64,000 nt of DNA from Ruditapes philippinarum (taxonomy: Eukaryota), in contig NW_026862113.1 of the NCBI RefSeq assembly GCF_026571515.1, forward strand, positions 62,001-126,000. Reading direction: 5' to 3'. Shown here in pieces: positions 1 through 64,000 of the stretch. The translations under genes and the position numbers were made by a program. The notes under the pieces are model-generated. The model worked only from the letters and a program-made list of their open reading frames with translations, was not told the DNA's origin and searched no databases. Each line of letters opens with the position of its first letter. Within the stretch, counting starts at the first letter, position 1.

Positions 1-1306
1 GATGTTACCACAGGGTCTGGAAAGCCAAACAATGGTTACAATGGAGGGGCAAGTCATGCAGCAGTCTCTGGTGGTGAAAAAACTGTCTATGGAACATCAT
101 ACAACTCATTGTATAGACCAACAAGTGCTGGTAGCAGGGGGACTTATAATGTTATAACTAAAGAAAAAACTGGAGGTATGGGAGGGGGTTGGATACATAC
201 AAAGATCGGAAACCTATTGATAAATGATGGTACCATTTCAGCAGATGGTGCAAAGGCTACATCAAATGGTGGAGGAGGTAGTGGGGGAAGTGTTCTTATT
301 GAAGTTTATGAGTTTGAAGGATATGGAAAGATTTCTGTCATAGGTGGAGCAGGCTGGAGTAGCAATGGTGCTGGATCAGGAGGAAGGGTAGCAGTTAATT
401 GTACTCTTGTAATTGAATTTGAGGGAAACTACATAATGTATGGAGGGATTGGGGCAAATGATTTACAGAGTGCAGGAGGTGGCACAGTCTATCTAGAGGA
501 TATTAGGTCATCCAGAGCATACAAGCGTCTTCTACTTGACAACCATGGTAGACCTTGGGACAAATATGCAACTATAGATGAAAGTTTTACCTACCATTAC
601 TTTGATGAAATGCATCTTGTGAATAAAGCTACAGTCCACATGGTGGAAGATAACAGGAAATCTTTACTGGAAGTTGACAAGGTGTTTGGAGATGGTACAG
701 GTTTAATTCAAGTGCATAAAAACCAGGTCTTGAAGGCGGAATACAGACCTTTGATAAGAAATGCATTCCTTACTGCAGTAAACTTCATTATTGATTATGA
801 ATCAGAAGTATTTTTCCCATCTATAATGTATGTTTATGGTGAAGGAGTCTTGATGACTGGCCAGACTGAGTCTAGGTCTTTAGCTATGTTTGGGAGACTG
901 ACTGGAATAGCAGACATGATTCTTGGGTTTGAAACCTTGCTTTATTTTGGAGATCATGCTCACACAGCAGGTATTGATGCAGATACTCAGACCTATTCAA
1001 ACATTCAGCCAGAAGGAACTGTTATATTCGGAACGCTTGATTTGAGAAGTTACTCTGAGATAAAGTATTCCCCAGATAAGACTGTGTTACAAAAGATTGC
1101 TAAAATTGATGCAAGATACCAGTCTAAAATCTCAGCAGAGAGCATTACAATAGAATGTGGTATACTGAACATAGAAGCTGGGGCTACATTGACGTCATCG
1201 GCTATATATAGACCACAGGATACATTAGATGAACAGTTGGGCAAGGGAGGAGATTCAACTGGAGGAAATGGTGCTACAGGTGGAGGCTATGCTTCAATGG
1301 GTGGAG
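1..1306 (+). CDS. Exon 1 (5' truncated): Gly-rich/beta repeat unit
   Basis: Open frame from base 1 (DVTTGSGKPNNGYNGGASHA...GGGSGGSVLIE...GSGGRVAV...). Donor G|gtaagt at 1307, phase 1. Confidence 0.9.
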
Positions 1307-4300
1307 GTAAGTGATTTAATTAGTGTTTTTTGGGTTTGTTTTTTTTAGTATTTAAATAGTGACCAGATTTATATGGTCAAAAATAATGTTTGATTGAAAC
1401 ACAAAGGGTTTTGAATGATATAAATTAACCTATATATTTGTTATATATCGTTATAATTTTTAAGGTTTTATAGATATTTACCCATATTTTCTACTTATAT
1501 TTCATGGATTTGCATAGTTGTCTTATTGCTTTAGATAGAGAATTTGTTATAATTATATTGTAAGCTTGAAGCTACTCTTCCAGTCATGTGTGTACAGATT
1601 ACAGGGCATATAAACACTATTTTTATCAATATTTAAGGGTTGTACAGCAGTGATCTGTCAGTGATAACTGGAGGAGGAAACTATTACGGCAGTCTGTACC
1701 TACCTAAACACAGAGGTAGTAAAGGTGGATCTGGAGTAAACAGTCCCAGTGGCACTGGTGGAGGTGTCATTAAACTTAAGGTACATGTCTTGTAGTCATC
1801 TTAAAGGTGAATGCCTCCGGATGGGCCAAAATATTTCTGAAAAAATTAAACTTACTACTACTTTAAGAAAAGTAAACAAACAACAATTTACATGTTATGT
1901 ACATGTACAACTAAGTATTGATTTTGGGGTCTTTATCACCATATTTCTAGTGCGTGACTAATGCAGTAATTGCTATTTTTGCTTTTTTGACCTCTTTATC
2001 GGAAATTTACATGTACATGTTTTAATTGTTAGGGCTGTTTGCAATGTGTAAATTACTTAATTTGTTCATTTTACAATGTTTTACTTTAAAATACTTTTTC
2101 AAAATTTTCATGACAATTTGCATGAATCCTGAGACATGCTGCTTTAATGTTGACTTTTTAACCCTTACCTTCCAAAATTTGTAAAATTGACATCATTTTG
2201 TTTAGACACTAAATGGAAGGGATTTTTGAAAGCCATTAGTATATTGTCTGGTCAGATTTCATGCATGTGTAGGCAAGGCTAGTGGCTTTAGTATGTCAAT
2301 ACTGTTACTGGAATCAAATAAAGAGAATGTTTATTGATAACTTCATTATGAATGACATTTTAGGTGGCTACAGACCTTCTTGTAGATGGTACAATATCAG
2401 TGGATGGCTCACATGGCAGTATAAGTGGTAAATCTGGTGGTGGTAGTGGTGGAACTATTTTCATTGAGTATGTTTACAGCTGTTTTCATATCTTAAAAGT
2501 AATTCAACCTTGTTCTTGGACTTGAGGCACTTTATCAATTTAAATGCTAGTATTCTTCTTGACTTCTCTTGGTTTCCAAGTTTAAGTGACATGTCCATTC
2601 AAGGGTACATAGTGAGTAAACAGGAAAATGTCAAAATAAGTACATTTTGCCATGTTTCCTTTTAAATATATAATTAACTTCACTGTAAATAACTCGTGTG
2701 ATCAAAGAAAATTTCAATAAATATCTATCAGCATTTACCAGTAACGTTCAGTTTATAAAAAGAGTGGGATAGTCTTTGTATATTTTATTTCAGCTGTATA
2801 ATTTATCTTTTCAATCACCATCATAGATATATATAGTCAATTCAGCTCAACTTGAGAATGAAAAAATGAGCATAATGTCACTCTTAGCAAGGATTTTTAA
2901 GTTAAAACTTTCTATTTCTTTTACTGAGAAAAACAGTGGTCTGTAAAATATAAATATATATTATAAGATAGTTGTATTCATGTTTCTTTTTCATTTAAAA
3001 ATATATATTTTTCTTGTGTCACAGGTCGATCAACCTTGAAGGTCATGGTGTCATACAATCACAGGGTGGGGATGGTTACAGTGGAGGAGCAGGGGGTAGA
3101 ATTGCAGTGTATCTTGATACACAGGTGTATTACCATGGAAAATATCAGTCTCTTGGTGGGGATGGTAATGGACAATATCTCTCACAAGGTGGACCTGGTT
3201 CTGTCTACATACAGGATACAAGGTTTGACTGTCTTAATTTTTACCTATAATTTGTGAAGCTGTATCTGTGGTTAAACACACAAGTTCTAAGACATAATTC
3301 TGCATACAGGATCAGAGATAGCCAGCACACCAGAAATTTCCAACTGCTTGAAACAAACCTACTTGAGTAATAAATTAGATAGGCTGTGAGATATTTTTGA
3401 AAGATGTTATTTTAAGATGTTATAAGTATTACATGCTTTTCAGTGAATAGTGAAAGTTATATTTTGATAATTTCACAGTGAAATTATAAAATGTTTTTCA
3501 CTTTAGCAGGACTATTATCTGAATGTGGAGCAAAAGAATATTTCTTAAAAAGGTGGAAATATTGTTAAAAATAGACTCTGATGTGCTTCATAACAAGAGG
3601 CACATAAATATCTGCAAATACGATTTTAAAACTGTTACAAAATTTGTACAATTTTACAGAATTACTTTTTAACATTTGATGATGTCATAAATGAGACCAG
3701 ATGTCGGATCATTGCTATTATAAATCAGTAATAAAAAATATTTTAAAACCCCTAAAAGACATGAAATAAGTAGAAAATTTGTTTCTTTTTTATGTAAGAT
3801 CAAATTATATTTTGCTTCTGAATGCCAGCTCTTATATTTTCGCTCATAATTATGCCATTCTTGAAAATATTACATCTGGTTTTCACTTTGTAAAATATAT
3901 AAATCTTGTATTCAAAAACAAACAAATATCCTCTACATTTTAGTTGATGAATTTAATACCTTTATAACATAATTCTACTTAGTGCCTAAGTTATAGTACA
4001 TGTGTTTATTGCTTTATTTATCTCATTGTCACATATTTTATAGTCTTTTTTAAGACAAATTTGAGATTATATATTCAACCATATGATACCATGCTAAATT
4101 TGTGAACTGGTGTTTTCAAATGTAATGTAAATGTTCTTCACTAATGTTTAGAAGATGGACCCGGATATTGAAATCAAAATGACAGAAGTCTGTGAGTAGC
4201 CAATTGTATAGTGTACTATAGTGTGTTAGGAAAACTCAATTACCTAGACTGGCTCTATACTGGTAGGCAAATCACTCTTGCTGTAGAAATTTAAAATTAA

Positions 4301-7300
4301 AGCCTGATAGCAAATACTTTTCATGAATATGTTTTTTCAACAAATTTGCAATTTTGGTAAACTTTTTAAATTAAATTTTAGATATTCTCGAAAATATGAA
4401 CAACTTCATATAGACAATAAAGGAAGGTCATGGGATCATCAGTACATACTTGATGAAATAGATAATGGCGCCTCCAAGGATAATTACTACTTTGACGAGA
4501 TTTATATAACCCGGAACGCGTCAGTTCAACTAAAATCTGGAGACAATTTACTGAGAAACCTAACATGTAACAAGATTTTCGGTGATGCTTCAGGAAGAGT
4601 TTATTTAAGGGTAAGTTATGGTTTTGGGAACAAGTCTGGGTGGGCTTACTGAGAAAATTAAGCTGTTTAGATAAATTATGAATAACAGTTTTCACAACAA
4701 CAGCCATATTAGACGATCATTAATTACAATAGTGATTGGGAATTTTGCATACTCCATTTTAGGAAAAAGTGGAAATTTTTGCATTTGGGAATGGGTCTGT
4801 AAGTTTACAAGAAATCTAAAGAAGGCGGAAAACTCTGGTCTATCATATGATTTTTTCATTGTGTACAGTTGAACTTTATTAATATTAATTAATTTATTTA
4901 TTTCAATTAATATCTTTCATGGAGAATAAATGATCACCTTAGTACAAGAACATAATAAGTCCTAAATTTAACAGCAATTAATCAGTTATTGCACTAAGAT
5001 GATGATATATCATTTCAAACAACATATTTAAAAGATATTGACTGTCAGAAATAAGGAACACTGTTATGGTATTTAGGCATTAGAATTTAAGCATTAGACT
5101 GTTCTATTGATATAAGCTGTCTTTTACAGGCCAACCAGACAGCTTTCTTAGAAGAGTACCAGACACTGACTAAACTACCAATTAACTTATGGATAGACCA
5201 AGGTGCTCGAGCGTACCTCTCACCTCTCATCTATATCCTCGGCCTCGGGGAAATAGCTCTTAAATGGAATGGAGAAATGGTCAGTGTGCGTCACATTAGG
5301 ATCATCCCTGGACGGGTCATTAATATCGAAAGACAAGCTATGACGAGTCTAATTGAGGATGGTAAATTAATAGTTGGTATACCAGGAGCATTCCAATTTG
5401 CATCTATGGAATTAGGTGCCACTGCTCTGATGGAATTGCCTCCACCCATGCCACTGTTGTTGACAGTTGGCATATTGGTAATTTTATGTTTTGTTATGAA
5501 AATTTTATTACAATTTTATTGTATTTATTATACTAAGTGGTACATTTGGTTCATTTAAGCAAAGATTTTTTTTTTATATTTTACTTGGGGGTGGGCCATT
5601 GGGGAGGGTTCTAGGGGTGTTTTACTTTTTATAATCTGAGAAAATAAATACATATTTATTTAGATATGTAACATGCCATTTCAAAACTTCTTTTTAAAAG
5701 ATAATTCCTCTTTTAAAAGATTTAAAACATATTTATTTAGATATGTAACATGCAATTTCAAAACTTCTTTTTAAAGGATAATTCCTCTTTTAAAAGATTT
5801 AAAATTGTTATTTTCTTTGTATTTGGATGTTTCAAATTAAAAAACAACAACAATAAAATGAAAAAAAAGAACAGTTGACTTAACCTTATCATTTTTAACA
5901 GGATATCAAATACGACTCGCGATTTAAGGCAGATTCCTTCCAAGTTCTAGCCACAGATTTCTACCTGGAACCTCTTGCTCAGTTTGTGTGTATAGGGACT
6001 TCACGTGAATCTCAAACTGGAGACTCACCAAACATTGGTGCTGGCGCTGGACATGCCACTGTTGGTGGTGGATGTGAGTGCCATCTTTTATTTCTTGAAC
6101 TTCCGACTTTTGCTTTAAAAACAATATATTTATAAAATGACACATTTTTTATGCGAAGCACTTTATGTTACAGCAGATGAATAATTATATACATGTGTTG
6201 CATTTAATTTATCTGTAAAAGCCAAAATTAAACAATTTTGGTCTCATTTATTAGTATTCCAACTCATTAAAGGGTTATGAGTGATGATAAGCTGCACGTT
6301 TCGGCTTATTTTTTTACAATTTCAGGCTGTCCAGCGTCCCTAAAATTCCTAAAAAATCCTAATTTTTTTCAGTTTGGCTAAAATTCCTAAAAAAATGAAA
6401 AATTCAAAGGGAATTCCTAAAAAAGCCCTATTTTTTAACTTAAATTCCTATTTTTTTTATCTTTTGTGATAAACATATCGCGAAACAACCATATTTCAAT
6501 CACAAATTCAGTCAGTGGAGTTGATGTCATGTCTGACTTAAAATGGCATAAAGTCACATGTTGTATTTACTTCAATGCCATACTTGATTAATTACCAGAT
6601 GTTATCAGAAAAATAATAACTGTTTGTTTTAAATGGAACAATGAAAATTGTCAGACTTTGACTATATCAAAATAATCACCTGTTTAAAATTGTGATAAAA
6701 ATTTTTCCAAGGAAGTTACATTTTTATTGGCTACAGAGTTTTACCATTTGCCTCAGTCTCAGGTGTATTTAAAGCAAATCTTTACATGATGAAACTACTA
6801 AATATCATCAAACTTTATGTAGGGGTCCTTACTAATAAAATCTGAATTTGTAATCAAGTTATTTTCAAGTGGTGACTGTAGAACAGATCTTTTGTAAGTG
6901 ATACCAGCTGGCAGATCTAGACAAGTTTCCATTGCTAATTATAAAGTGGGTAAGGTAAACTGGTAGTAATGATTGGATGCTTAAACCCTTTTGGTACCTA
7001 ATTAGGGTATTAAGAAGTGACACCTCCAGTTGCCCTTTTTGTACACATTAACATGTACTGAACATATGTTATAACATATAGTGTAAGTTTTTGAAAATCT
7101 GGAAAAAAAAACTGTTGAAAGTCATTGAAAAAACTGACATTGTTGTGAAATTTCTACAATTTTTAGTAGCCTGGTTTAATTGTCTTAAACAAATTCTTCA
7201 TAGGTGAATACCCTGCTGTTTGAATTTAAGTTTAAATATTCCTGGAAATGACTTGAGTGGGTCATATTGTTTTTATTGTTTTTTAAGAAAGATCAAGACT

Positions 7301-22300: not shown

Positions 22301-22828
22301 AAGGTTTATTTTTATGAACATATATATGAAGCAGATGTTATTTAAAATTTTTATATATGCTTTTCATTATTTCTTTTGTTCGCAATTTGTAGTAAATATA
22401 AAGTTCTTTCTCAGCATCATGGTAACTACATATAGAATTTGAATATCGTATTTGTTGTCATGGAAACATACTTGATAAATTCATTCTCAGAGTTATTAAA
22501 AAGTTTCTTATACTTAGTCAAAGAGAAAATTGCAGTCTCTGAGCCAGTAAAATTGAAATTTATATCAAATTTTTTGAAATACAGTGTAGATCATTTCTAC
22601 CATCTTTTATAGTAAAACTACCTTCTTTTTTAGTAAAATTGAAAATATCTGTCTTAGCATAAGTAAAATAGTCTGAACATCTTTCTTAACAAAATAGGAA
22701 GTTTACCTCATTGTTAAAACAAAATTGAAAAGGGTTATTATACATACATGTATGTGCATACCCAAAAGTAGAAGAGCTAGGTTTTTGTGTCGCCTCTACG
22801 GAGTAGTGGCGACATATAGGGATCACTT

Positions 22829-22862
<34 letters not shown>

Positions 22863-52800: not shown

Positions 52801-55800
52801 TTTAAATCATTAATGCCGAGACTTGTTTTACCCTGACACATGTATGAGAGTTCATAAGTGTTAAATGGTTATAATTTGGTAATATTTTGGGGGAGTCAGT
52901 TCTAGAATTTATCTGATTTAAAAAATATGAAATTATCAATTTTTCAAGTTAAATTCTAATGAGGGAGAGGAACTCATATAAGTTTTCTTTCATTCTAATC
53001 CCTTTCATGTAACAATTAAATACATATAAAATGTAATAAATGTAAAATATTGAAATATATATGTTTAAACTAAATTTTAATGCTATTTAAAAACTAAATT
53101 TTAATGCTATTTAAAAACTAAATTTTAATGCTATTTAAACTTTGTTTTAGATTTTGATGGCCCATATTGTGACATAGAATGTATTGACGAGCAGGGATAT
53201 TTTGTGGATGACCACGATGGTGAAGTTGTAAATTCCTCAGTTGTCCCAGTGTTTAGATGTGTAGAGAACATTGGGTCTGACAATTACAAAGCTTGGTTTG
53301 GCTACGAGAATTTAAATCCGAACAACATTTACATTAAACTGAAAGGTGAAAACTCAAATTACTTAAACAAAAGAAGAGTGACTTCTGGCACAAACCTACC
53401 CACAAAATTCATATCTGGAACTGTGAAATATGCAATGGTTATAGGGTAAGTCATAGATTTCATAAAAGAAGACTGATAGTTTATGTCACAAGTTAAAATT
53501 CAATCTTTTTCAGCATATTGATGAATTATACAAATATATGTCGGCAGTTTGAAACGGGATATTACAAATATGACAGTTACAAACATGTTTAAACTGATGC
53601 TTGAATTTTGATAATTAATATAGCGATAATGTCATTTGTGACATTAGGATATTAAATCACATTCAGTTTAGGTGTAAGTATTTCAATAATTTTTATAATT
53701 TGATTTTATAATATTGATACATGTAGCTGGTAAAAATTATAATGACCAATCTAAGCTTTTTATATTTTAATCAATATTTTATTTAATTGTCGAAATTCTT
53801 TCTCACACATTCTCAAATTATTAGATTCCTGCATTTTTATGCAAATAATGAATTAAATGTTTAGCATTGCAAAGTTTTGAGTTAAACATCTTAGAAATTA
53901 GTTTTTTGATCTCAGCTTTAAGGTAAAGTCATGTTATATGAAACATTTTGTTACAGACCTGCAAACTTAACAGTTATAAAAGAATACAGTTGGCGAATAA
54001 TTACAATGAAATTTAATTACACAAGTATCCTGGCCAGTGTTGACCCATCTATTGTTTGTCAAGAATCTCCTGAATTGGTGAGAAATTTCTTTCATTGTAC
54101 ATTTTCAACTGAATTTTTTTTTACAAAATACCAATTTCAGTAGTTACAGCAGTAGAATGGAACCCTAACAAAGTAGTGAATATTCTTTACGCTTTTTATT
54201 TTGCATGTTTCTATTTAATTAAAATGCAGTTGTCCATGTTATGTAATTGCAAATTACAGTTTGTACTTCAATTGCAATGGATTTATACCAACTTAATTAT
54301 CATTTGATTTTTTTCTATTTTTAGATCATCTTAAGTTTAAATAAAGCTTGAGAATTTCATCTAGGATTTAATAGGACTTTCTTGAAATAATAGATTTTTG
54401 CAGAAATATTGCATTTTTAAACAATTTTTATTATTCTATCCAGGATGGTTTACCTAGAATTGTTGGACATTGCAAATGTAAGCATGGTTACTATGGAGAA
54501 TCATGTAGAAATGAATGCCCAGGTGGAGGCAGCAATCCATGTTTTGGTAATGGAATATGTGACACGGCATCTGGCGAATGCAAATGTGACATAGGTGCTA
54601 ATCAGAACAACAGTTGCCAATCTTGTCTCCCTGGATGGTTTGGTAGTGATTGCAAACTCCCGTTAACCGTAAGAGGTAATGATTAAAACAAAAAGAATTG
54701 GACCCATTTAACCCACTGCAGAATGAAAGCAGATTATGATAAATGATACTGACTAAATTGCAGAATTATATAGTTTATTTTTGCTTTGGCATTTCCAGCT
54801 ATAATTTCAACCTGGTAAGATTTTATGTGTATTACCAATTGAAATAAATCTAAGCTGATGAAATATTTTATAAAAAAAATGGCAAAAATATTGTTTATCA
54901 TGAATATTTGTTTTCAGATTCATCAAAAGAATGGTACACAGGAATGATATATGGCTTTGGTAGCTGCCAGACATTTGACGGAACTAAATATGATTGCAAT
55001 GCATTTGGTCAATACCTTGTGACAAGTGTAAAAATTGGAATATCTCAAGAACTAAAAATATTTGCACTAAGGGTAAACAAACGTTAAATCAATTTAACTG
55101 ATTTTGAGTTTTCAACAGAAATAGTATTGTTGTGAAAATTGACATGATGACTTTTGCTTTTGGAATAAATAACGTCAAATTAAAAAGAAAAACATTCAAA
55201 TTTATCAATCAGCATTTGCTTTGTCATGATGTATTAAATGATGACAATTAACAATTGGGAAACTTTTAGTGCCAAATATTTTCCTTTTTGATAGGTAAGA
55301 CCACAATTAATTATTTTAGAAAAATATGTGTAAATTCAAGTTTTATTCTTTTCAGGTGGCAAGTTCTAACAGATTGGTTACTGCAGTCACAAAAGCTGTT
55401 GCCATCACTTTATCAAGTAAAATTTTAGTTATACAAATAGATAAAGAAGGCTTGGGTAGTAAAACATGGCTAAATGGTGAAATATTTGCAATTGGAAGTG
55501 GACTTGAAATTGCCACTGATGTTACAGTAATTCAAATGTCACCCACTCAATTTGTCTTAACAATATCAACAAACTTTTATGTAAATATTGACATCCGTAA
55601 ATACTCGATTGACATATTTGTGAAAAGCAAAGCTACTGTCTGTATTTCTTCCACTGGTTTACTTGGATCATGTGATATGGATCAAACAAATGATTTTAAA
55701 CTATCTGATAGCAACATTCTTCAAGAAGGCAGCTTATTGTATGATCTTACAGTTTCCAACATTGAAAATTTGTTTCTGCCATCTTGGCAGAGTGATGATG

Positions 55801-58800
55801 AAATATTTACACACATAATACATGGGATTGTTGAGAGTTCAGCTCAAACTTGTCTTGAAATTAAATCTAGCCCAATGGAAAGTGAACCCTTACATTTCTT
55901 TACTGATGCTGAACTTACCGTTGACATTAGTTTTCGTATAGATTCGGATCACGGGACATGTTCCACTTTATGGTCGTACAAGAATCCGTCTGGGCATGTA
56001 TTTTCTGTATTGGTTTGTGAGATGTATATTTCATTTCTATATTTTTCACAAAGTGAGCAAATAACTGTTATAAATACGTTACCCGTACAGCTTTCAACAT
56101 GGTATCAGTTGTCCATGGTTTGGACTAGTTCAGAAAAAATGTTAAATTTCTACCTAATAGAGGATGGTTTATCTTACAGTAATGCATTTATACATGGAAG
56201 CATTGGGCTAAACACATTTGCCCCAGGCGGTACATTCATGCTTGGTACAACTCATTACCTCTCCCATAGTTTTGATGGATTTATAGACAACTTACTTATC
56301 TGGAAGTCTTCATTTACTTTGAAGGAAATTTTAGCTCGAGCATTTACTGTCATTATGGTTGAAAGGGAAGATGACCTATCTTACATTTGGAGATTTAATG
56401 AAGGTCGAGGTTTCAAAACGTATGATTCTACACGTCATCAGAAAATATTCAAATGGCAGATTGGCAATTGGGCAGATATTCACTGGAAAATCGGCGCATA
56501 CAAAATGAAATATTCATTTTTTCACAGTAAAAAAGACATTATTCTGTCACAGTCATCAGATTCTGATATTGAAAATTGTAAAGCTACAATAGCCAATATC
56601 CCTGGGACTGAACTTCTTGCAAAATCTGTAACTTATTTGTTCCTTACAGAATGTCTCATAAGCAAGTATCTTGTTCAAGAATTCGAAGGAATATATTCTC
56701 TTGCTACTGCAATAAGTGAACAAATAAACTTTGATCGGACATCAGCAGATTACCCTTTGAAATCTATTTGCAATGTCTACCCAGGTTTGTCTAACTGGTA
56801 TGGCATTAATTGTAATAGATATTGCGTTACTGGAGCTGGCCTTCTAACATCAGAAATATGCAGCTGCAACCCTGGTTACTTCGGAGAAAGCTGTCAACAT
56901 CAATGCCCATCTGCTCGTGGAAAAGTTTGCGGTGGGGGTATTTGTGACACAAACACTGGCCAATGTACATGTTCATCAACAAGGTATGACCCAAAGAGTG
57001 GTTGTGAGTTATGTACTCGTGGATGGATTGGTAAAGATTGCTCGTCAGTTGGGGCAAATATTCCAGACGATTTACCTAAGTTCTCAGCAGTATGCTTCGG
57101 GCAGGGGTATTGTAACATGTTTGATGGCCAAGCGTTTAATATAAGGACACCTGGAGAATATCTTTTATTTCAGAAAACGTCAGCTGTTCTCAAGGTTTTT
57201 GTGAGGATGAAACCTTGTGCCGGAAGTAGGACATGTATACAGCAAGTTTGGTTTCATTTAGCCTCAGATGACTTCACAATTAAAATGCCATTGACCGACA
57301 ACAAACCAATTATTTTGCATCACAACAACAGAAGAATTTCATTAGATAGCCTTGGTACCTACCGAATAAATGCTGATGCTTCAATTTCATGGATTGATAA
57401 AGTGACTTTACAGTTCGTTCTTGGACAGGTTACTGTTCAGGTGTCATACGTTAGACTGTCTCCTTACCTTTCAGTGAACGTTAAAACAAAATGCTCTTAC
57501 AATGATCAAACAGGGCTACTGGGAAATTGCAATCGTAATACCGATGATGACTTTCTGGATAGTGCAGGTCGAGCTGTTGCTTATAAAGACGTCAGTGATG
57601 ACATCATAGATAACCAGTTTTCTTTATATTTTACAAGAACTATATCTGTCCGTAACCATTTTATATATGGATATCCAGACACTTCACTTACAGAACCAGA
57701 AAATATGGCTAAAGGGTATAGTTTGTTTTTCAATAGAAGTGGTGCTATGACTGGCAAAGTACCCTCACATTTGTTTTATGACGAAAGCCATTTGAATGTG
57801 TCTTTAGAAATAAAAATCAAATGTCTAGCTGAAACAGGTTTCATTGTAGGATACTATGTGTCAGATTCGACAAAACAGTTTGCTTTGTACGTGAATAATT
57901 CCATGCTTGAAGTATATATACATCAACAAATTTTTACAACAGACATGCAATTAACCATTGGGAAATGGTATCATATCATAACATCATTCCAGGTCACAGA
58001 TAATTTCTTTAACGTTTTTGTGTACTCTGGTGGATCTCTCGAATATTTTACTCGATTTGATGCAACTGACTTATTTTTCCCTCCATCTGGGAACCTTTTT
58101 GCAGGGGAGTGGATCATTGATCCACCTTTACCATTATCTCCTTTTTATGGACTAATCGGAGAATTAAGAATGTGGAATATATATTTAGACATTCAAATGA
58201 CATACCAGTTGGCCAATGATGCAGACATAAGTAAAATCACAGGACTTATTTTAAATTACCAGTTCACAGAAGGTTTTGGTTTTACTTCATATGATTTGGT
58301 GTTTCATATCGGAATGACGATTGCAGAAATTGAAAATAAAGTGGCTTGGATTCTCTCCGACAAACCTGGTAAGGCAACAATCAGCCAAACCGTTTTAAGC
58401 TCTCAAGAGGTCAAGCGAATTATTGAATGTGAAAAAATGTTTTCAATAGCATCACTGAGTAATGCATGTAATGGATTTGGTGAAGATTTTTCAACATTTT
58501 ACATAGATGCTTGTAAAAATGACAACAGTTACGTTCCAACACTTCAGGCCTATGTTACCATCTGTATCGCCATTTTACGTCCGGTTATAAATCCAGTTAC
58601 AGATTTATGCAGAGATCATAGATCCAGTCACTATGACACATTTTGTGGAGAGTTTTGCCAGCATGGCACGCCCACGTATCATGGATGCACATGTGATATT
58701 GGATTTTGGTCTTGGAATTGTGCAAATGAATGTCCAGATCGTATAGGTGCCGATAAATTACCATGTAATAGCCATGGATCATGTGACAAAGACTCAGGAA

Positions 58801-61800
58801 ATTGTATTTGTTTTACAAACTTTAATGAAACTAACAATTGTGAACGTTGCTTAGAGAATTTTACAGGTGAATATTGTGAAAAGGCTAAACTGGTACTGCC
58901 AGACCTACCTATCAATAAGAATGTCACCAACCCTGTCAGAAAGATTTGTCAAATATTTGGCTCTTTGAAAGTAAAAACATTCAACAATAATGTCATTTCA
59001 GTACAGAATTCTGATGAATGGATCTTGATAGACCCTCTAACAAACGGTTACCCTGAAATAAGAGTAAGAACAATTCAGTGCAGAAAGAAAATTTGTTTAA
59101 AGTCCATTCAAATCTCATACTTGTCTGAAATTATTCTTATTGGTGGCATGAGTAAAAAGAAATCTGAAAGAATAAAAGTAAATGAAAACTTTGGCACATC
59201 TACGATGCAAAATTTCCTTTTTACATCAAAGTCAGAAAACACTTTCATTCTCAAAAGCAAGAAAAGTACATTGAACAATTATTTTAAACTACGGGTGCAT
59301 TTTACAAGAAAAGGATATTTGTCTCTTCTAATGAAACTTGACTGCAATAACTGCACAAGAAGCACACTGTGTAAACCGGATTCTGTATTTTTGGATACAT
59401 ACAAGCCAAATGATTCATCAAGTTTTAGTCATATCACTATTCCCAAATCAAACCAGAGTTTATCAGATAGTTTAGATGAACCAAATACTGAAGCACTATT
59501 TAGTTTAACGTTAAATCGGTCAGACGAAAGAGATGATTTTAATGAGCCTTTCATATCAAATGTTTCCGCTACAGGGGATAAATTCACGATCATATCATCA
59601 AATATTTTGACTAATGTCTTCTCGCCAACTGAAAGAAATTCTATACAATTCAGTTTAAGGCTGAATGAAGGCAGTTCAGGTGGCATATTTCAGTATGTTG
59701 GCGAGTCAACATTCACGCTATACATAGAAAATGGTAGAATTAAAGTGCATGCGGATTCAGCTATTATTGATACATTTATAAATATCCAGACAGGCAACTG
59801 GTGTGATATTAAAATGTCATATGATGATATTGGGCAGATCATAACATTACTTGTAACATGCAACGAAGAAACCGGAAAAGAGCCAATTACAAAAACAAGT
59901 ATATTTCCTATACCTGCACGATGTTTTACACCGAATGGAAGACTAGTTATTGGAAAACCTATCGGAGCTTTTAATACATCTTTAGGAGTGGTCTGTGGTG
60001 GATCATTTACTGGTGAAATAGATGATTTCTATGTGTATAAAGGAAATGAAAAAGAACCTTTGATCTACTTCAATTTTGATAAAGTTGTGGGTCAGAAAAT
60101 TACTGATTCCTTAGGTACGATAAATTACCTAAAAATTCATGACCCATACAACAAAGGTGCATCTAAGTTCACAATATCGACTAAACCATCAGTTTTAATA
60201 TCAACGGAAGTGAAATCTGAATTTTCTGACAAGGCTATGTATGAACAAACAAGGAACAAGTGTACTCAGATCTTTGACACTCCAAGCATAAAACATTCAT
60301 GTTCAAGTCTAGGTGTAACTACAAAAGAACTTTTTATAGGGATTTGTATGGATGAGGTTGCTGATGATGGTAATGCTGTGTTTTCATTCCAGTCTTACTT
60401 AGCTCTCTGTAATGAACAACTTTACGAAACAAACGAAAACGAGGAAAACGAGTCGCAAGATAATGATACAACGCGATACCTGTGCCATGAAGATTTTGTC
60501 AGTGCCGGCTACGTTGGCAAGGACTGTAATATTAAATGTGTCTATCCTGAACCAACTGGAGACGGTCTTACTTGCACTTGTGCTAAAGGTTATTGGGGAA
60601 CAAGTTGTAATTTTGAATGCCATGGAAGTGCAGAGATGCCTTGCAGTAATCACGGTATTTGCGATTCCCAAACCGGCCAGTGCACATGTAGCTTCAATAG
60701 GCAAGGGAATGATTGCTCTCAGTGCGCAAAGAACTGGTATGGTAAAGATTGCAATGTTATGATTCAAAGCAAAATTTTCTCGACAAATAAATTTACAGCT
60801 TCAATAACAAGTAACAGTTATCTCAAAACGTTTGATGGAGCTTTCATACAAATAAACAATGACGACAGACCATTTACTATTTTCCAAGATCCTACAATTC
60901 AAATTGAAGCACTCAAAGGACCAACAGACTTGTACCTAAGCGCATTAATGGCCATAGCAATTAATATTGAAGGGAAAATTATAACTATCTATCCGCAGAA
61001 TTCAGGAACCATCAAGGTGAACGGTCAGATAATTTACCTTGGTCAGATGGATTTACAGTTTGGATATAAAATTGAGAAAATCAGTGAGACAGAGATTGTT
61101 GTAACAGGGCCAAACAACTTTGAATTTAAATGCACTATCATTAAAGGTGACGGTCTGCAAATAGGAATGTCTATCAGTAAAACGGGTTGCAGTTCATCAA
61201 AGGGTATTTTCGGTAAATGTTCACAGGGTGATTCTACCAAATGCTCAAATTCAGATTTTGTTTGTATAATTGACCACATTGGTATTGTTGAAGCAGCAAA
61301 AACCAACAATATTGACAAGGCAGCTTTATATAAGTATTTCAAATCTGTAAGTAAACCTTTTACGGAAACAATATTTGCAAATATTCGGCAATCAAAAGTA
61401 ACATCAGGAACAGCAGTACGAATTTCAGGCGGTGGATACGTGTCTTTGCCAGTTATTGATACAGATACCTTTGGTGTACACACTTATGAATTAGCAATCG
61501 AAATACGACTAAAATTTGAAATTGCTTTCACTTGCACAATCATGAGTATTGCAAATAAAATGGCAACGTTTGGTATCGTGATTGTAAATGATAAATATTC
61601 AATACAATATGGTTTATGGAATTACAATACAAACATACACGTTGTAACTGGACAATGGACAAGTATAGGTTTATCACTAAATGAAACATCTGGTTTGCTT
61701 CTTTTCCATGAAATACATGAGACAAGTTACGGACAATACAAGCGAATCAACATTTCAGATGCCATTAAAGAATATGGGCCTCCAATTGTAGAAGGGAGTA

Positions 61801-62930
61801 CAACTTTGCTAGGGAAATGGCAAAATATAACCACAATTATCAAGACACCTGGTCCTGGTGATGCTAAATTATTGCCTGTATTCATTTGTGATAGGATTCT
61901 TATTTATAATAATCTAAAATCAATTAACGACTTTGTTGATCTCTTTATTTTAAATATTCATAAAATTTCACCCGTTAATCTGCCATTACACGATTCTGAC
62001 ACATCTTTAAGATTGATGATTTATCTTATAATAGGAGTAAATTTCAATGACGGTGCTGGCTTTGTTATAAAAGATTTTGTTCATGGAAAATTTGGATATA
62101 TTGGCCTGACTGGCAATGTAGAATGGGTAAATAGTGATCCACCTATAACGCATTACAGTGTACCTATTCAAAATGGTGTTGATCTTATACCGGAATCTTT
62201 GTCAAATGCTAACGCAACCAGTTTTTGTTCATCTTTAAAGGAAAATCTTGAAAAGAAATGTCCCAGTATGTCAAACCTTTTGAATTTCTTTTCTGTATCT
62301 TGTATAAACGACATTCTTCAAACGGGCGACAATAATAATGCCATTGATACCGTAGTAGCTACCTTAGATGAATGTGTTCGTCAAGACCAATACACGGAGC
62401 AACCAACCGACGATTTGTGCAAATCCTTTGGCAATAGAAAATTTCCAGTTTTTGGAGGAGAAGATTGTAAGCAGAAATGTTCGTATGGAAATTTCAAAGC
62501 AGGAGTATGTGTATGTGACAGTGGGTATTATGGTGAAGAGTGTCAGTTAGAATGTCCAGGTGGTCATCATTCGCCATGTGCTGGTCATGGTAATTGTGAT
62601 ATTGTGACAGGAAAATGTAATTGCGATGTTGAATGGAGCGGAAATGACGTTTGTAGTATTTGTAATAAGGATTGGAGTGGAAGTAACTGTGACCTATTCA
62701 ACGCAGACCCAAATATTGGTGACATTGATATTGGAGATGACGAAGATCACATTGATGACTCTATTGATGTAAACAGTACAATACCATCTATTATAGATGA
62801 TGGTAAAGGAATGACGTGCAAGGTTAAAGGTAAAAAAGGGAAGGTTACAATGTTCAACTCCAAGGGGAAGAAGTTGAGCAAAACATTCGACAAAGCTCTG
62901 TTGCTTGAGGTGAAGAATCTACGTATTTTG
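1..62930 (+). CDS. Giant multi-exon gene, 5' and 3' partial (46 exons, about 8,470 aa in window): Gly-rich/beta repeats + tenascin-type EGF array + VWD/LamG/C8-like/EGF modules; predicted extracellular protein
   Basis: All long ORFs are on the + strand and join through GT-AG introns with matching phases. Repeat motifs continue across junctions. Frame 1 is open from base 1, and the last exon ends at a gtgagt donor (62931). Confidence 0.9.
1638..1780 (+). CDS. Exon 2
   Basis: taag| GLYSSDLSVITGGGNYYGSLYLPKHRGSKGGSG...GGGVIKLK |gtacat; phase 1 to 0. Confidence 0.8.
1805..2143 (-). mobile_element. Non-autonomous DNA transposon (Kolobok-like, TTAA-flanked, AG...CT ends)
   Basis: ttaa-aggtgaatgcctccggat ... 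atcctgagacatgctgct-ttaa imperfect TIR. Its right end is the reverse complement of the left end of the element at 32759. Confidence 0.55.
2364..2467 (+). CDS. Exon 3
   Basis: ttag| VATDLLVDGTISVDGSHG...GGGSGGTIFI(E) |gtatgt; phase 0 to 2. Confidence 0.85.
3025..3222 (+). CDS. Exon 4
   Basis: acag| SINLEGHG...GAGGRIAVY...GGPGSVYIQDT(R) |gtttga; phase 2 to 2. Confidence 0.85.
4382..4610 (+). CDS. Exon 5
   Basis: ttag| YSRKYEQLHIDN...YYFDE...IFGDASGRVYLR |gtaagt. Confidence 0.85.
5130..5477 (+). CDS. Exon 6
   Basis: acag| ANQTAFLEEY...PINLWIDQGA...LLTVGIL |gtaatt. Confidence 0.85.
5651..5804. repeat. 77-bp tandem duplication (2 copies)
   Basis: catatttatttagatatgtaacatgc.atttcaaaacttc...aaaagatttaaaa starts at 5651 and again at 5728. 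Confidence 0.85.
5902..6073 (+). CDS. Exon 7
   Basis: acag| DIKYDSRFKADS...GAGAGHATVGG |gtgagt. Confidence 0.85.
6323..7490. mobile_element. MITE with perfect 13-bp TIR and 6-bp TSD (hAT-like CAGG ends)
   Basis: caggctgtccagc ... gctggacagcctg, flanked by caattt on both sides; cctaa-motif arrays near both ends. Confidence 0.8.
7736..7956 (+). CDS. Exon 8 (apparent 1-bp deletion and stop near 3' end)
   Basis: ttag| GGDPTVGGVAYGSIYKPSQTGSVGG...GGGSG. The consensus continuation GSIFIE lies in a shifted frame, so the 3' boundary is uncertain. Confidence 0.7.
8137..8359 (+). CDS. Exon 9
   Basis: ccag| GMSGHGKV...GAGGRIAIH...GGPGTVFVED...YQS(R) |gtttga. Confidence 0.85.
8397..8602. mobile_element. 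TTAA-flanked MITE (piggyBac-like CCC...GGG ends) with internal long hairpin
   Basis: ttaa-cccttaaagtgctg ... cagcatgttcaggg-ttaa; internal palindrome cagtatagagcc..cagcctgcacg-tc-cgtgcagtctg..ggctctatactg. Confidence 0.7.
9156..9303 (+). CDS. Exon 10
   Basis: atag| LYIDGRNLKVPKP...LDFEHVMLSQR |gtaagt. Confidence 0.8.
9992..10228 (+). CDS. Exon 11
   Basis: tcag| AMLEIGPG...MGDRTGYLH...PPVNFQIDQGS...PAFQ |gtatgt. Confidence 0.85.
10409..11518 (+). mobile_element. HINE (Helentron-associated, DINE-1/pearl-like) with about 150-bp internal tandem repeats
   Basis: 5' tttt-tgtgtcgcct subterminal IR with hairpin; (gtcggc)n microsatellite; about 6 core repeats; 3' aggcgacaca IR, short hairpin and ctagt end. 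Confidence 0.8.
11600..11720 (+). CDS. Exon 12
   Basis: ctag| LDGLLIGVLNLTLEE...ETFEN(G) |gtatgt. Confidence 0.8.
12273..12452 (+). CDS. Exon 13
   Basis: ccag| VLGIGRLAM...HMRYNSKI...ATFDTT(G) |gtatat. Confidence 0.8.
13121..13273 (+). CDS. Exon 14
   Basis: gtag| RGGEG...GLGAGHGGYGGGADHDNYNS(G) |gtatgt. Confidence 0.85.
13779..17959 (+). CDS. Exon 15 (4.2 kb; three full Gly-rich/beta units plus the start of a fourth)
   Basis: 1415-aa ORF 13736-17983; acag| KPYGSYSKP ... GSGGRAAIHCE |gtaaga. Confidence 0.93.
18495..18679 (+). CDS. Exon 16
   Basis: tcag| WRYWYGGSFLNEGG...AGAAGTTY...EVDH(R) |gtttgt. Confidence 0.87.
19185..21146 (+). CDS. Exon 17 (apparent +1 T frameshift at about 20015-20017)
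   Basis: Overlapping ORFs 19195-20043 and 19793-21217 join as ...GGGFVEL/TIGKSFHIDG if one T is removed. Donor G|gtaatg at 21147. Confidence 0.85.
21604..21740 (+). CDS. Exon 18
   Basis: ccag| GSSQHGAVGGSYYG...GSGGGG...SYIEINAGT |gtaagt. Confidence 0.85.
22106..22286 (+). CDS. Exon 19
   Basis: taag| RLTLYGTISVNG...GGGGSGGTIKV...NVIV(G) |gtgagt. Confidence 0.8.
22782..23748 (+). mobile_element. HINE with dimeric (155+178 bp) core repeat
   Basis: tgtgtcgcct ... aggcgacaca IR; (gtcc/gtct)n microsatellite; ttgtcc(g/a)gactac unit starts at 22898, 23053, 23231, 23387 and 23566; cttgtt end. Confidence 0.82.
23837..24433. mobile_element. TA-flanked MITE (Tc1/mariner-type)
   Basis: ta-ctggttgggacca ... 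tggtccccaaccag-ta terminal inverted repeats. Confidence 0.65.
24604..24760. repeat. Small foldback element with about 30-bp inverted arms
   Basis: gtttttcccagctaatctgtaggtacaaac ... gtttgtacctatggattagctgggaaaaaac. Confidence 0.7.
24841..25118 (+). CDS. Exon 20
   Basis: acag| NGGGSGGRICAY...GSPGTVWI...LWVDN...YPTK |gtaatt. Confidence 0.85.
25335..25500 (+). mobile_element. SINE 3' fragment with (aaac)n tail
   Basis: gaaat...ggcacctgaggtcttcctccac...gtgttggtgtgac, shared with the copies at about 45000 and 63700; ends in aaaacaaaacaaacaaacaaa. Confidence 0.6.
25551..27123 (+). CDS. Exon 21: last Gly-rich unit and start of the EGF array
   Basis: atag| DTIVEHIGGDGTG..., in frame with ORF 25638-27152. 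Switches to CSGHG..C.C..GY.G..C repeats at about 26595. Donor G|gtagga. Confidence 0.9.
27253..28423. mobile_element. TA-flanked MITE (Tc1/mariner-pogo type, CAGT ends)
   Basis: ta-cagtagaacttctatgagtcgaa ... ttcgacttaccgaagttccactg-ta, about 23-bp imperfect TIR; many subterminal gtcgaa motifs. Confidence 0.8.
28516..28827 (+). CDS. Exon 22 (EGF repeats)
   Basis: acag| ADCGDPDCPGEPNC...YCEIP(G) |gtacat. Confidence 0.87.
29281..29724 (+). CDS. Exon 23 (EGF repeats)
   Basis: taag| CPRHPVTNVEC...QDCSGR(G) |gttagt. Confidence 0.87.
30302..30443 (+). CDS. Exon 24 (EGF repeats)
   Basis: acag| GCDSASATCTC...DPPQC(F) |gtaaat. Confidence 0.85.
30893..31599 (+). CDS. Exon 25 (EGF repeats)
   Basis: gtag| CSDGWFGEAC...CACQP(G) |gtaaca. 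Confidence 0.88.
31951..32072 (+). CDS. Exon 26 (EGF repeat)
   Basis: ttag| WTGDGCEIPDC...CVCNTEN |gtaagc. Confidence 0.85.
32430..32607 (+). CDS. Exon 27 (EGF repeats)
   Basis: acag| GWFGPDCNKKC...CICFDQP |gttagt. Confidence 0.85.
32759..33009 (+). mobile_element. Kolobok-like non-autonomous element, same family as 1805-2143
   Basis: ttaa-agcagcatgcctccagattcatgc ... gaggtatgcagct-tgaa. Confidence 0.5.
33170..33328 (+). CDS. Exon 28 (EGF repeats)
   Basis: acag| KAYRGVLCEDDGCPG...CPEDCN |gtatgt. Confidence 0.85.
34070..34998. mobile_element. Probable degenerate non-autonomous DNA element
   Basis: Short IR ttattacccc (about 34195) / ggggtaataa (about 34990); recurring gtaacagta/tactgttac motifs at both ends; family not assignable. 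Confidence 0.35.
35185..35334 (+). CDS. Exon 29 (EGF repeats)
   Basis: tcag| RGTCVFDK...CHRTCDT(G) |gtatgt. Confidence 0.85.
35621..37994 (+). mobile_element. HINE with 171-bp satellite core (about 7 near-identical copies plus degenerate copies)
   Basis: atacccccacca ... tggtgggggtat IR; gtcc microsatellite; units at 35715, 35886, 36057, 36227, 36398, 36569, 36740 and 36910; 3' atcgc-attta-gcgat hairpin and ctagt end. Confidence 0.85.
38545..38631 (+). CDS. Exon 30 (EGF repeat)
   Basis: gcag| ISCHMTCNNHGVC...LGYK(G) |gtattg. Confidence 0.85.
38962..39199 (+). CDS. Exon 31 (EGF repeats)
   Basis: acag| EQCDEIGCPG...GDKCQY(R) |gtatgt. Confidence 0.85.
39211..40077 (+). mobile_element. HINE with 167-bp core (about 4 copies)
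   Basis: atgcccccaca ... tgtgggggcat IR; (gtcc)n; units at 39324, 39492, 39659 and 39826; gtgtcc-tat-ggacac hairpin and ctagt end. Confidence 0.85.
40792..40904 (+). CDS. Exon 32 (EGF repeat; weak aaaaag acceptor)
   Basis: aaag| CYNGTENPGDFRCIC...HGTCTSE(G) |gtattg; phases match both neighbours. Confidence 0.8.
41296..41811 (+). CDS. Exon 33 (EGF repeats)
   Basis: tcag| TCDCGFEGYRGDFC...SNFDI(G) |gtaggt. Confidence 0.87.
42227..42415 (+). CDS. Exon 34 (EGF repeats)
   Basis: ttag| TCTCETYWIGEGC...QEPMDS(G) |gtaggt. Confidence 0.85.
42641..43399 (+). mobile_element. Old degenerate HINE-like element
   Basis: tttagcttgcctg start; about 4 diverged repeats (ggtatcaa.atgaaa.ttg...gagttatgtccc); ctcttgt end. 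Confidence 0.5.
43542..44057 (+). CDS. Exon 35 (EGF repeats)
   Basis: aaag| NCVCESKC...CNSGYW(G) |gtacat. Confidence 0.87.
44478..44639 (+). CDS. Exon 36 (EGF repeats)
   Basis: atag| KSCETQGCPG...PDCSSK(G) |gtatat. Confidence 0.85.
44970..45235 (+). mobile_element. Degenerate tRNA-derived SINE copy
   Basis: catgtaaggaagctgtccagc...gcctgaaataatgcac...ttcctccacca...gtgttgggtgtgac, similar to the 63680-63920 copy. Confidence 0.55.
45416..45624 (+). CDS. Exon 37 (EGF repeats)
   Basis: acag| DCDGNNYWPPRC...NGNGTK |gtaagt. Confidence 0.85.
46284..46341 (+). CDS. Exon 38 (58 bp)
   Basis: tcag| SCNCSEGYKGDFCEQLDCP(G) |gtacat. Confidence 0.85.
46521..48341 (+). mobile_element. HINE (pearl/CvA-like ends) with about 146-bp core (about 12 copies)
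   Basis: ttttagctcacctga ... tcaggtgagc IR; gtcc/gtc microsatellite; aacactctag units from 46620 to about 48215; agggccat-c-atggccct hairpin and cttgtt end. Confidence 0.87.
48347..49923 (+). mobile_element. HINE with 145/137-bp core (9 copies), AGGTCA-rich
   Basis: atacccccgca ... tgcgggggtat IR; units at 48428, 48565, 48710, 48855, 49000, 49137, 49282, 49427 and 49572; hairpin and ctagt end. Confidence 0.87.
50523..50669 (+). CDS. Exon 39 (EGF repeats)
   Basis: taag| EPDCSKYGTC...NFCNGN(G) |gtaagc. Confidence 0.85.
51619..51807 (+). CDS. Exon 40 (EGF / laminin-EGF-like)
   Basis: ttag| ECLLLPEETAPKCVC...GFATEK(G) |gtctgt. Confidence 0.8.
52468..52587 (+). CDS. Exon 41 (Cys-rich)
   Basis: acag| GRVCECHDDDIKGHW...CTQCAS |gtaagt. 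Confidence 0.83.
53067..53139. repeat. 24-bp tandem repeat x3 just upstream of the exon 42 acceptor
   Basis: aaactaaattttaatgctatttaa at 53067, 53091 and 53115. Confidence 0.85.
53151..53445 (+). CDS. Exon 42 (end of EGF array; non-EGF 'CV..AWFGYEN' domain)
   Basis: ttag| FDGPYCDIEC...VVPVFRCVENIGSDNYKAWFGYENLN...LPTKFISG...MVI(G) |gtaagt. Confidence 0.85.
53957..54077 (+). CDS. Exon 43
   Basis: acag| PANLTVIKEYSWRI...CQESPEL |gtgaga. Confidence 0.8.
54444..54675 (+). CDS. Exon 44 (EGF-like block before VWD 1)
   Basis: ccag| DGLPRIVGHCKCKHGYYGESC...CPGGGSNPCFGNG...GWFGSDC |gtaatg. Confidence 0.87.
54918..55072 (+). CDS. Exon 45 (N-terminus of VWD domain 1)
   Basis: tcag| ...IYGFGSCQTFDGTKYDCNAFGQYLV...FALR |gtaaac; TFDG is the VWD signature. 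Confidence 0.85.
55356..62930 (+). CDS. Exon 46 (7,575 bp): four VWD-LamG/pentraxin-C8-like-EGF modules plus the start of a fifth VWD
   Basis: 2551-aa ORF 55326-62981; acceptor ttcag| at 55355, donor |gtgagt at 62931. Motifs seen: (T/M)FDG, GLLG(S/N)C..DF, W(Y)H/Q....W, F.G.ID, W.FNEG.G, and C..GY.G..C...C.GHG.CD..TG.C.C. Confidence 0.93.
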
Positions 62931-63679: not shown

Positions 63680-63920
63680 TGTCCATGGGCGAATGCTCTA
63701 GGTCATTGATTTTATTTGCCCCTCACCCCTTTGGATTGAAATCCCGACAGGGACTTTGGCTTTTGTCATGTGAGAAGCTATCCAGCTGGTTTCCGACCGT
63801 CTGTGTTTTTTCTCAGGTGTCCGTTCATGCCTGAAATAATACACGAAAGGGCACCTGAGATCATCCTCCACCAGTAAAGCTGGAAAGGCGTTATATGACA
63901 CACCGTGTGTTGGTGACAAA
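63680..63920 (+). mobile_element. tRNA-derived SINE copy (near full length, degenerate A/B boxes)
   Basis: A-box-like tgggcgaatgctctagg and B-box-like ggattgaaatccc, followed by the core catgtgagaagctatccagctgg...gcctgaaataatacacg...ggcacctgag..cctccacca shared with the other two copies. Confidence 0.6.
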
Positions 63921-64000
63921 ATTCAACAAATATGTTTTAATTAAATGCTTATTTTTCTGCGGTAATATTTGAATGTGCAACAATGTTATATAAAGCATTT

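Follow-up and report, generated by a model that had tools for sequence, protein, structure and literature searches.

The locus considered here is a 64,000-nucleotide stretch of the genome of the clam Ruditapes philippinarum (the window), which corresponds to positions 62,001-126,000 on the + strand of contig C10600 (NW_026862113.1) in a 1.41 Gb assembly of 15,874 contigs. It raises the question of whether the many repetitive exons it carries belong to one gene, how far that gene extends and what its product would do at or outside the cell. A preliminary description, made from the letters of the window, had read 46 exons encoding about 8,470 aa and had proposed a giant matrix or surface scaffold. 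Using the repeats of the window to search the surrounding contig, we find that the window is probably the central two fifths of one gene with a floor of ~17,000 codons, and we favor as its product a giant type I membrane protein that would act as a cell-surface filament or coat. Coordinates are those of the window unless "contig" is given.

Extent of the gene

Three profiles were made from the window's own repeats (the beta module, the EGF supermodule and the VWD-LamG module) and were used to scan all open reading frame (ORF) segments of at least 20 aa on both strands of contig 1-186,000. We observed 81 profile-supported segments, all on the + strand and all within contig 1-151,360. The number of - strand segments matching the gene's profiles in the scanned range was zero, and no profile match was found past the last exon up to contig 186,000. 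The window holds 38 of the 81 segments, covering 8,363 aa, and five more short exons found by eye or by homology bring its total to ~43 exons and ~8,400-8,700 aa, which agrees with the earlier count. The gene is also open at both window edges, as had been stated: the first exon seen in the window begins 1,730 bases before it and the fifth VWD-LamG module runs past the end. The order of parts described before, in which glycine-rich beta modules are followed by EGF repeats, an orphan domain and VWD-LamG modules, was recovered on + strand ORFs.

Altogether, the gene spans at least contig 577-151,360 (~150 kb) and contains at least 85 coding exons. The profile-supported length has a floor of 16,119 aa; because the terminal exon, a discoidin domain and unassigned exons add to this figure, the protein should have at least ~17,000 residues. 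The earlier estimate of more than 8,400 aa thus holds for the window, and the whole protein is roughly twice the size then supposed. Extension of the locus, which had been suggested as a check, located the C-terminus; the 5′ end is probably beyond the contig start. Relatives from Potamilus, Ptychodera and Saccoglossus have a signal peptide and ~150 residues ahead of the position aligned with contig 583, so the corresponding signal peptide and ~150 N-terminal residues of the clam protein probably lie beyond the start of the contig. An ORF at contig 208-357 was considered as the signal-peptide exon and ruled out, since no relative matches it and some ~150 residues should come ahead of contig 583.

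Evidence for a single transcription unit

Gene structure and comparison between species make it very likely that the locus is a single transcription unit. Profile positions continue cyclically from exon to exon across the whole locus. The transition from beta-helix to EGF sits within one 533-codon exon, the first VWD domain is split over 54,918-55,072 and 55,356 onward, and module 5 of the VWD-LamG series is split across a 16.6 kb gap. Between 50,670 and 55,355, every exon is connected to the next by frame-compatible GT-AG pairs of good consensus; with several candidates per intron, these pairs are weak when taken alone.

The clam gene is, by sequence match, one of two or three paralogues in the genome, and two paralogous contig sets keep the order of parts. 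On C14126 (- strand) the same order runs on one strand over 138 kb (79,130-217,376), with beta modules at 124,304-217,376, a junction exon at 122,236-123,717, EGFs, a 2,824-codon VWD exon at 93,022-101,412, more VWD exons and a transmembrane (TM) exon at 79,130-79,705. Of another copy, C815 (83,418-252,615, +) carries the beta-helix/EGF half and C6057 (20,772-53,396, -) the VWD/TM half. C5762 is also among the paralogous contigs, and on C14126 one 2,087-codon frame is the equivalent of three C10600 exons. The duplication appears to be old, because exon-level orthologues of the C10600 type and of the C14126 type both occur in other species. Single models that join the parts are found elsewhere among animals. 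KAK3101710.1 (Pinctada, 7,318 aa) contains 3.5 beta modules, ~12 EGF supermodules, the unassigned (orphan) domain, ~6 VWD-LamG modules, a TM helix and a tail, and KAK3724602.1 (Actinostola, 5,796 aa) contains beta modules, EGFs, VWD-LamG modules and a TM-like stretch. In the Ptychodera RefSeq model XP_070533134.1, which runs collinear with four or more clam exons, beta modules are joined to EGFs.

The seeming continuity could instead conceal at least two neighboring genes, such as a beta-helix/EGF gene followed by a VWD-LamG/TM gene. Annotation of Diadema places the beta part and the EGF/VWD part in two adjacent models on one contig (XP_071506024.1 and its neighbor; P0174, P0300), most annotated relatives have the beta-helix part only, and the 16.6 kb gap separates the window-end exons from the next large exon. 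We consider such a division improbable: nothing resembling a start or a terminal exon was seen at the presumed boundaries, the passage from beta-helix to EGF lies within one exon, VWD 1 and module 5 are each divided between exons, and the Pinctada and Actinostola models and the clam paralogues hold the parts together in the same order. Internal promoters or isoforms may be present within the locus. A different doubt arises from a single frame break. At 20,011 (+) an apparent one-base insertion (gtt-g-aac) shifts the frame between beta modules 21 and 22, where there is no room for an intron, leaving the broken ORFs 19,171-20,040 and 19,787-21,214. If this shift were real, the copy could be a decaying pseudogene, which we regard as very improbable since no other break was seen in ~17,000 codons and open frames of 2,553, 1,783, 1,418 and 1,014 codons persist in DNA of ~33% G+C. 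The site is crossed without a shift, with the reading FVNFTIGK, by P0023, a 673-aa ORF (95-97% identical) on a public metagenome contig, so that the insertion is likely an assembly error or a segregating allele.

Glycine-rich beta-helix modules

The longest series of repeats in the gene consists of ~23.5 glycine-rich modules of ~440 aa each at contig 577-88,621, identified by 72 profile matches in strict cyclic profile order on the + strand. The series reaches 62 kb upstream of the window, to the contig start. Modules 15 to 24 fall within 1-26,600 (+), in line with the ~10 units counted there before; by their profile matches, some of these modules occupy a single exon and others are spread over 4-7 small exons. 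The window opens in the 3′ part (1-1,311, +) of an exon of 1,014 codons whose start is at contig 60,270; from its ORFs and profile order, this exon contains the end of module 13 and modules 14 and 15. The largest beta-helix exon has 1,418 codons (13,727-17,980, +) and contains modules 18-20 and the start of module 21, with profile matches of E 1e-121 to 1e-146; its translation shows three ~440 aa repeats.

The beta module has no sequence match in Pfam, NCBIfam or PDB, and its sequence relatives number 3,077 at E ≤ 0.001 among 1.84 billion representatives. An AlphaFold2 (AF2) model of module 19, built from 20 aligned sequences, is all-beta with short strands (predicted local distance difference test score, pLDDT, 78.7; predicted template modeling score, pTM, 0.75). 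A Foldseek search of this model against PDB gave nothing significant (best E 0.33). In a wide structural scan with VIA-align, the top matches were right-handed beta-helix adhesins and glycan-active enzymes, with Z scores of 11.6 for Vag8, 11.1 for a tapirin-type adhesin, 10.7 for Awp1 and ~9-10 for SRRP, UpaB, VacA p55, Pet, EtpA and HMW1. The module is therefore predicted, from the model, to be a glycine-capped right-handed beta-helix. Its glycine-rich first third also superposes on the springtail polyproline-II antifreeze protein (Z 9.5 over 98 residues, root-mean-square deviation 2.2 Å), which we treat as a likeness of flat glycine layers and not as kinship.

The first beta module is interrupted by a discoidin (F5/8C)-like domain. 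Using a profile built from the F5/8C regions of relatives, we located it at contig 3,895-4,215 (E 8e-6) and then at contig 4,583-4,825 (E 0.17); the Pfam F5_F8_type_C model is weak at this region (E 0.07). The G8 domain (PF10162) gave no match to the modules of this gene even at E 10 (2,692 aa scanned). In a Mytilus relative, one module matches Pfam G8 (E 3.5e-7) within its non-glycine half, at profile positions ~270-350, and an ESM Atlas neighbor cluster carries G8. These matches offer a lead towards fibrocystin-type proteins; the clam modules themselves do not show it. Giant bacterial surface proteins (P0048, P0081 and others) also carry tandem repeats of the animal module, limited to its glycine-rich half, and their companion domains are RHS, Ig-like, FN3 or LamG.

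Junction exon, EGF array and unassigned domain

The beta-helix series passes into the EGF array in the 533-codon junction exon (25,551-27,149, +), whose frame encodes the end of the last beta module, a glycine-rich cap and the first ~7 EGFs. Residues 320-497 of this exon match Pfam EGF_TEN and EGF_Teneurin, and the exon is also present in the paralogues on C14126 and C815 at 63-64% identity. The array of teneurin/tenascin-type EGFs extends over ~20 exons (26,559-50,677, +), as defined by Pfam, cysteine counts and the supermodule profile. Its ~331 cysteines correspond to ~55 EGFs, arranged in 12-13 supermodules of ~150 aa, close to the ~50 tenascin-type repeats read before, and their subtype is borne out by matches of the EGF exons to EGF_TEN (E 5e-19 to 9e-19) and EGF_Teneurin (E 3e-24). 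A search of the array for the calcium-binding EGF consensus (regular expression D-x-D/N-E-C) gave zero matches.

Two exons with laminin/attractin-type EGFs follow (51,619-52,587, +; Pfam EGF_laminin E 1.5e-5) and are collinear with Pinctada residues 3006-3109 and Diadema residues 1540-1621. They precede the unassigned or "orphan" domain of ~120-140 aa (53,151-54,077, +), which is encoded by two exons at ~53,151-53,445 and ~53,957-54,077 and carries the motif AWFGYEN-N-NIYI. This domain has no Pfam match, and ESM Atlas gave sub-threshold rows only. The domain is family-specific: its first exon has counterparts at the corresponding place in Pinctada (E 2e-16), Diadema (E 4e-13) and Actinostola (E 1e-9). 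The second exon has no match at E ≤ 0.01 and was placed only by its position and by frame-compatible splice sites. Just before the first VWD domain lies an exon with an EGF pair (54,444-54,675, +), recognized from Pfam, profile matches and candidate splice sites, and this pair matches the EGF segment that closes every VWD-LamG module.

VWD-LamG modules

The N-terminal half of the first VWD domain, with the motif TFDG, is encoded at 54,918-55,072 (+), as read from the translation, with frame-compatible GT-AG sites on both sides. The giant exon that follows (55,356-62,978, +) carries what is left of module 1, the whole of modules 2-4 and the beginning of module 5 with its VWD. Its open frame (55,320-62,978) comprises 2,553 codons and begins at profile position 55. 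We observed profile matches of E 1e-178 to 1e-205 in this exon, together with Pfam matches to VWD (E 2.4e-23), Laminin_G_3 (E 8e-11) and EGF; Pfam VWD also matches in module 2 (E 2.9e-11) and in one downstream module (E 1.4e-9). Exon-level orthologues of the giant exon have 75%, 57%, 47% and 40% identity.

In total there are nine VWD-LamG modules, five of which lie downstream, and eight of the nine end in EGFs. Module 5 continues with its LamG part at contig 126,776-127,348 and its helical and EGF part at contig 141,719-142,171, and modules 6-9 occupy exons at contig 141,602-146,950 and 147,048-149,333. Seven modules align over their full length, from the TFDG start through the TGLLG-C...DDF end of the VWD domain, the LamG core (W, F-G-IDE-W) and an F-EG-G motif to a helical segment with 5-6 cysteines and then 2-3 EGFs. 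The preliminary description had given these modules as (VWD-LamG-C8-like-EGF) in four or more copies. The modules themselves stand; "C8-like" can be kept only as a likeness, as the segment is helical and cysteine-bearing but gives no match to any Pfam family, C8 included, at E 10. A motif scan of the VWD-LamG exons found no GDPH-like motif and no furin-type R-x-K/R-R site.

Membrane anchor and tail

The last exon (contig 149,654-151,360, +) lies ~25 kb beyond the window and encodes a helical cysteine-bearing domain, a TM helix, a basic stretch, a tail and a stop codon. The hydrophobic stretch of ~29 residues, FPVWAIILIICVGVLIISIIVACCCFCIC, is followed by MKKKKRRK and by a tail of ~400 aa rich in Ser, Lys, Pro and Asp, which is predicted to be disordered and cytoplasmic. 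Alignment of C-termini shows that two paralogues and the sea anemone Actinostola have kept the juxtamembrane helical cysteine domain and the TM helix, and a TM-like stretch is also present in the Pinctada model. Because the last exon combines a TM helix, a basic stop-transfer stretch, a tail and a stop codon, the product is probably a type I single-pass membrane protein. The surface half of the earlier "giant matrix or surface scaffold" is therefore retained in a membrane-anchored form with a cytoplasmic tail, and a simply secreted matrix protein is not. The tails of the three paralogues share the short motifs ETSF...STR, SP-I/M-MF and SPHP; no recognized signaling domain was found in the tail using Pfam.

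Introns and repeats

The window closes within the intron that follows the giant exon (62,979-64,000, +), and the next piece of module 5, at contig 126,776, begins 776 bases past the window end. In this intron, at ~63,682-63,900, there is a dispersed short repeat with thousands of candidates in the genome at 80-86% identity. Other introns contain tandem satellite-like arrays in which a unit of 145-171 bp is repeated 2 to 12 times with 78-96% matches (10,587-11,478; 22,890-23,637; 35,714-36,961; 39,316-39,967; 46,614-48,299; 48,425-49,704). Many of the non-gene entries in the ORF list are chance ORFs from these arrays. Within the 16.6 kb intron there is also a 333-codon open frame on the - strand (contig 136,367-137,365), which may be what remains of a transposon or else a nested gene. 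This frame, like the other ORFs in that intron and those beyond the gene end, has no Pfam match.

An uncharacterized metazoan family

Relatives of the clam gene are widespread among animals. The closest named ones are those of the heterodont bivalves Mactra and Mya, with 52-79% identity per exon. Molluscan relatives further include Potamilus, Mytilus, Solemya and Pinctada, and outside molluscs we found relatives in the hemichordates Saccoglossus (XP_077861759.1) and Ptychodera, the echinoderms Patiria, Asterias, Diadema, Lytechinus and Amphiura, the chordates Ciona (a tunicate) and Branchiostoma (amphioxus), the annelid Owenia and the cnidarian Actinostola. No vertebrate or ecdysozoan was among the named hits of these length-limited searches, which are not evidence of absence. 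Taken together, the relatives place the clam gene in an old, uncharacterized metazoan family and show that it is not a molluscan novelty.

The relatives share a common order, in which a discoidin domain in the first beta module and further beta modules are followed by EGF supermodules, the unassigned domain, VWD-LamG-helical-EGF modules, the juxtamembrane helical domain and the TM helix. The same beta-module profile covers their beta parts end to end, and precomputed domain lists for relatives also name PF26129. Where they differ from the clam locus is in completeness: most of their models are truncated, split or chimeric, none gives a function, and the ~23.5 beta modules of the clam exceed those of any single relative's model examined. 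The clam locus is the most complete genomic copy of the family seen in this analysis.

All named relatives are "uncharacterized" or "hypothetical", no characterized member of the family was found, and full-text literature searches gave no paper describing it. Automatic names in UniRef include "Tenascin-X" (Patiria), "F5/8 type C domain-containing" (Potamilus) and "EGF-like domain-containing" (KAK3101710.1, Pinctada imbricata). The expectation that pipelines would label the protein tenascin-like or split it is thus borne out by the Patiria name, by the two Diadema models and by a Mactra model that looks chimeric. This last model (P0170) appears to fuse parts of two tandem copies and has two discoidin-bearing N-terminal regions with an EGF patch between them.

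Proposed role and alternative explanations

We propose a working arrangement in which the C-terminal TM helix, with its conserved juxtamembrane domain, would anchor the protein, and short motifs of the tail would tie it to intracellular partners. The nine VWD-LamG-EGF units and the ~55 EGFs would form a stalk. Beyond it, ~23 beta-helices would form a distal rod with the discoidin domain near its tip, placing lectin-like surfaces at the far end. Given the textbook sizes of EGF domains and of the rungs of beta-helices, the ectodomain could be a stiff filament a few tenths of a micrometer long. On an epithelial surface, such a filament may serve in adhesion or spacing at the cell surface, or as a pericellular coat. 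The order of parts is kept in sea anemone, sea urchin, acorn worms and bivalves, which suggests that the protein probably does something basic at cell surfaces.

Two other roles can be set against the surface filament. VWD domains multimerize secreted mucins and VWF, and giant repetitive ectodomains are typical of matrix scaffolds; the ectodomain might accordingly be shed to become, much as the preliminary description had proposed, a secreted matrix component of mucus, periostracum or shell matrix, byssus or egg coat, with the anchor used only for delivery. There is precedent in corals, whose skeletal matrix proteomes hold ectodomains of transmembrane EGF/laminin G proteins (PMC4890752). The VWD-LamG exons nevertheless lack a GDPH-type autocleavage motif and a furin-type site, although other proteases are possible, and a membrane role is argued for because the TM helix and juxtamembrane domain are conserved as far as a cnidarian and several tail motifs are kept among the paralogues. 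We therefore think this explanation unlikely. A role as a membrane pattern-recognition or self/non-self receptor, belonging to the expanded innate immune repertoire of bivalves and signaling through its tail, would draw on the discoidin and LamG folds, which often bind carbohydrates, on the resemblance of the beta-helices to those of glycan-binding adhesins and lyases, and on the two or three paralogues in the genome. It fits poorly with an old family whose architecture is fixed and whose module numbers differ little between cnidarians and echinoderms, unlike fast-evolving immune families, and with a genome in which only about three copies were found and a tail that has no recognized signaling domain; such a receptor seems to us quite improbable.

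We thus prefer a single-gene, type I membrane protein acting as a surface filament or coat, and consider it the probable explanation. Several observations weigh against it. The 5′ end of the gene is absent from the contig, and the frameshift at 20,011 breaks the frame in this assembly. The single-gene case rests on gene structure and cross-species comparison, in which the splice sites are predictions, and the supporting models from other species are likewise predictions, several of them fragmentary or chimeric. The AF2 model of the VWD-LamG module is poor (pLDDT 49.9), with only the LamG core reaching 70-86; its secondary structure agrees with a beta domain, a beta-sandwich, helices and an EGF. 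The filament length and the role in coat or adhesion are drawn from the kinds of domains present. Finally, the C-terminal QTRL, considered as a class I PDZ ligand, was set aside as the paralogues end otherwise.

A broader and rather doubtful extension is that the family represents a pan-metazoan class of surface filament. In marine invertebrates, such filaments would coat the apical side of ciliated or microvillar epithelia or form an adhesive brush there, and their two dozen or so beta-helix modules would be related to those of the bacterial giants, perhaps because genes passed between bacteria and early animals in the distant past. At 17,000 residues or more, the clam protein would rank with the largest animal proteins, and we found no name, paper or correct full-length model for any family member. 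It contributes a ~440 aa repeat that has no Pfam match in the clam copy and the predicted fold of bacterial adhesins, and a pairing of VWD with LamG that is distinct from the VWD-C8-TIL unit of mucins and VWF. The locus can serve as a template for mending split or chimeric annotations across many invertebrate genomes, and Nematostella-like anemones, sea urchins and Ciona are tractable groups in which to study function.

Comparison with known systems

The preliminary description had found no characterized family with this architecture, and our Pfam scans support that view, with no FN3 or fibrinogen, no NHL or YD and no C8-TIL in any scanned exon. In the EGF array there is a resemblance to teneurins and tenascins, which share the EGF_TEN and EGF_Teneurin subtype with the clam protein. 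Tenascins differ in having FN3 domains, a fibrinogen globe and an N-terminal assembly domain, none of which was found in the clam exons scanned, and the clam C-terminus is a TM helix with a tail. Teneurins have a type II topology, whereas the clam protein is predicted to be type I, with the TM helix after the whole ectodomain and relatives that begin with signal peptides; the NHL domain, YD-repeat shell and Tox-GHH end of teneurins were not found by Pfam in the exons scanned.

The VWD part resembles VWF, gel-forming mucins, zonadhesin and alpha-tectorin, which likewise have repeated VWD domains with a TFDG start and a GLLG-C...DDF end. In the D assemblies of VWF and mucins, VWD is followed by C8-TIL; in the clam protein it is followed by a LamG jelly-roll and the unmatched helical cysteine domain, and TIL has no match. 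The clam VWD domains are also cysteine-poor, and the protein has no GDPH motif and no mucin (proline-threonine-serine, PTS) region.

In overall plan, fibrocystin, PKHD1L1, CEMIP and TMEM2 appear alike in combining a large ectodomain, predicted right-handed beta-helices and a single-pass anchor. PKHD1L1, a large beta-helix-bearing protein, forms a stereocilia coat (PMC6707252). Compared with these G8/PbH1 proteins, the clam protein has no G8 match and no IPT/TIG; it has many more modules, arranged in tandem, and includes EGF, VWD and LamG domains as well.

Bacterial adhesins provide the remaining comparison. The autotransporter passengers Ag43, Vag8 and UpaB, the two-partner secretion (TPS) exoproteins HMW1 and EtpA, and the tapirins share with the clam protein a fold-level likeness of one modeled module (Z 9-11.6). 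At the level of sequence, giant proteins of the Myxococcota type (AgmC-like) have ~40% identity to the clam module, restricted to profile positions 290-435 and 1-130; the middle, non-glycine half is missing from them. One of these bacterial giants matches NCBIfam AgmC_N, named for a Myxococcus gliding protein, at E 1e-52, below the model cut-off. The clam protein differs from bacterial adhesins in having no translocator barrel or TPS domain and in using a C-terminal TM helix as its anchor. What it has in common with the giant bacterial adhesins is a design in which an anchor carries a long extender and lectin-like parts are held far from the membrane.

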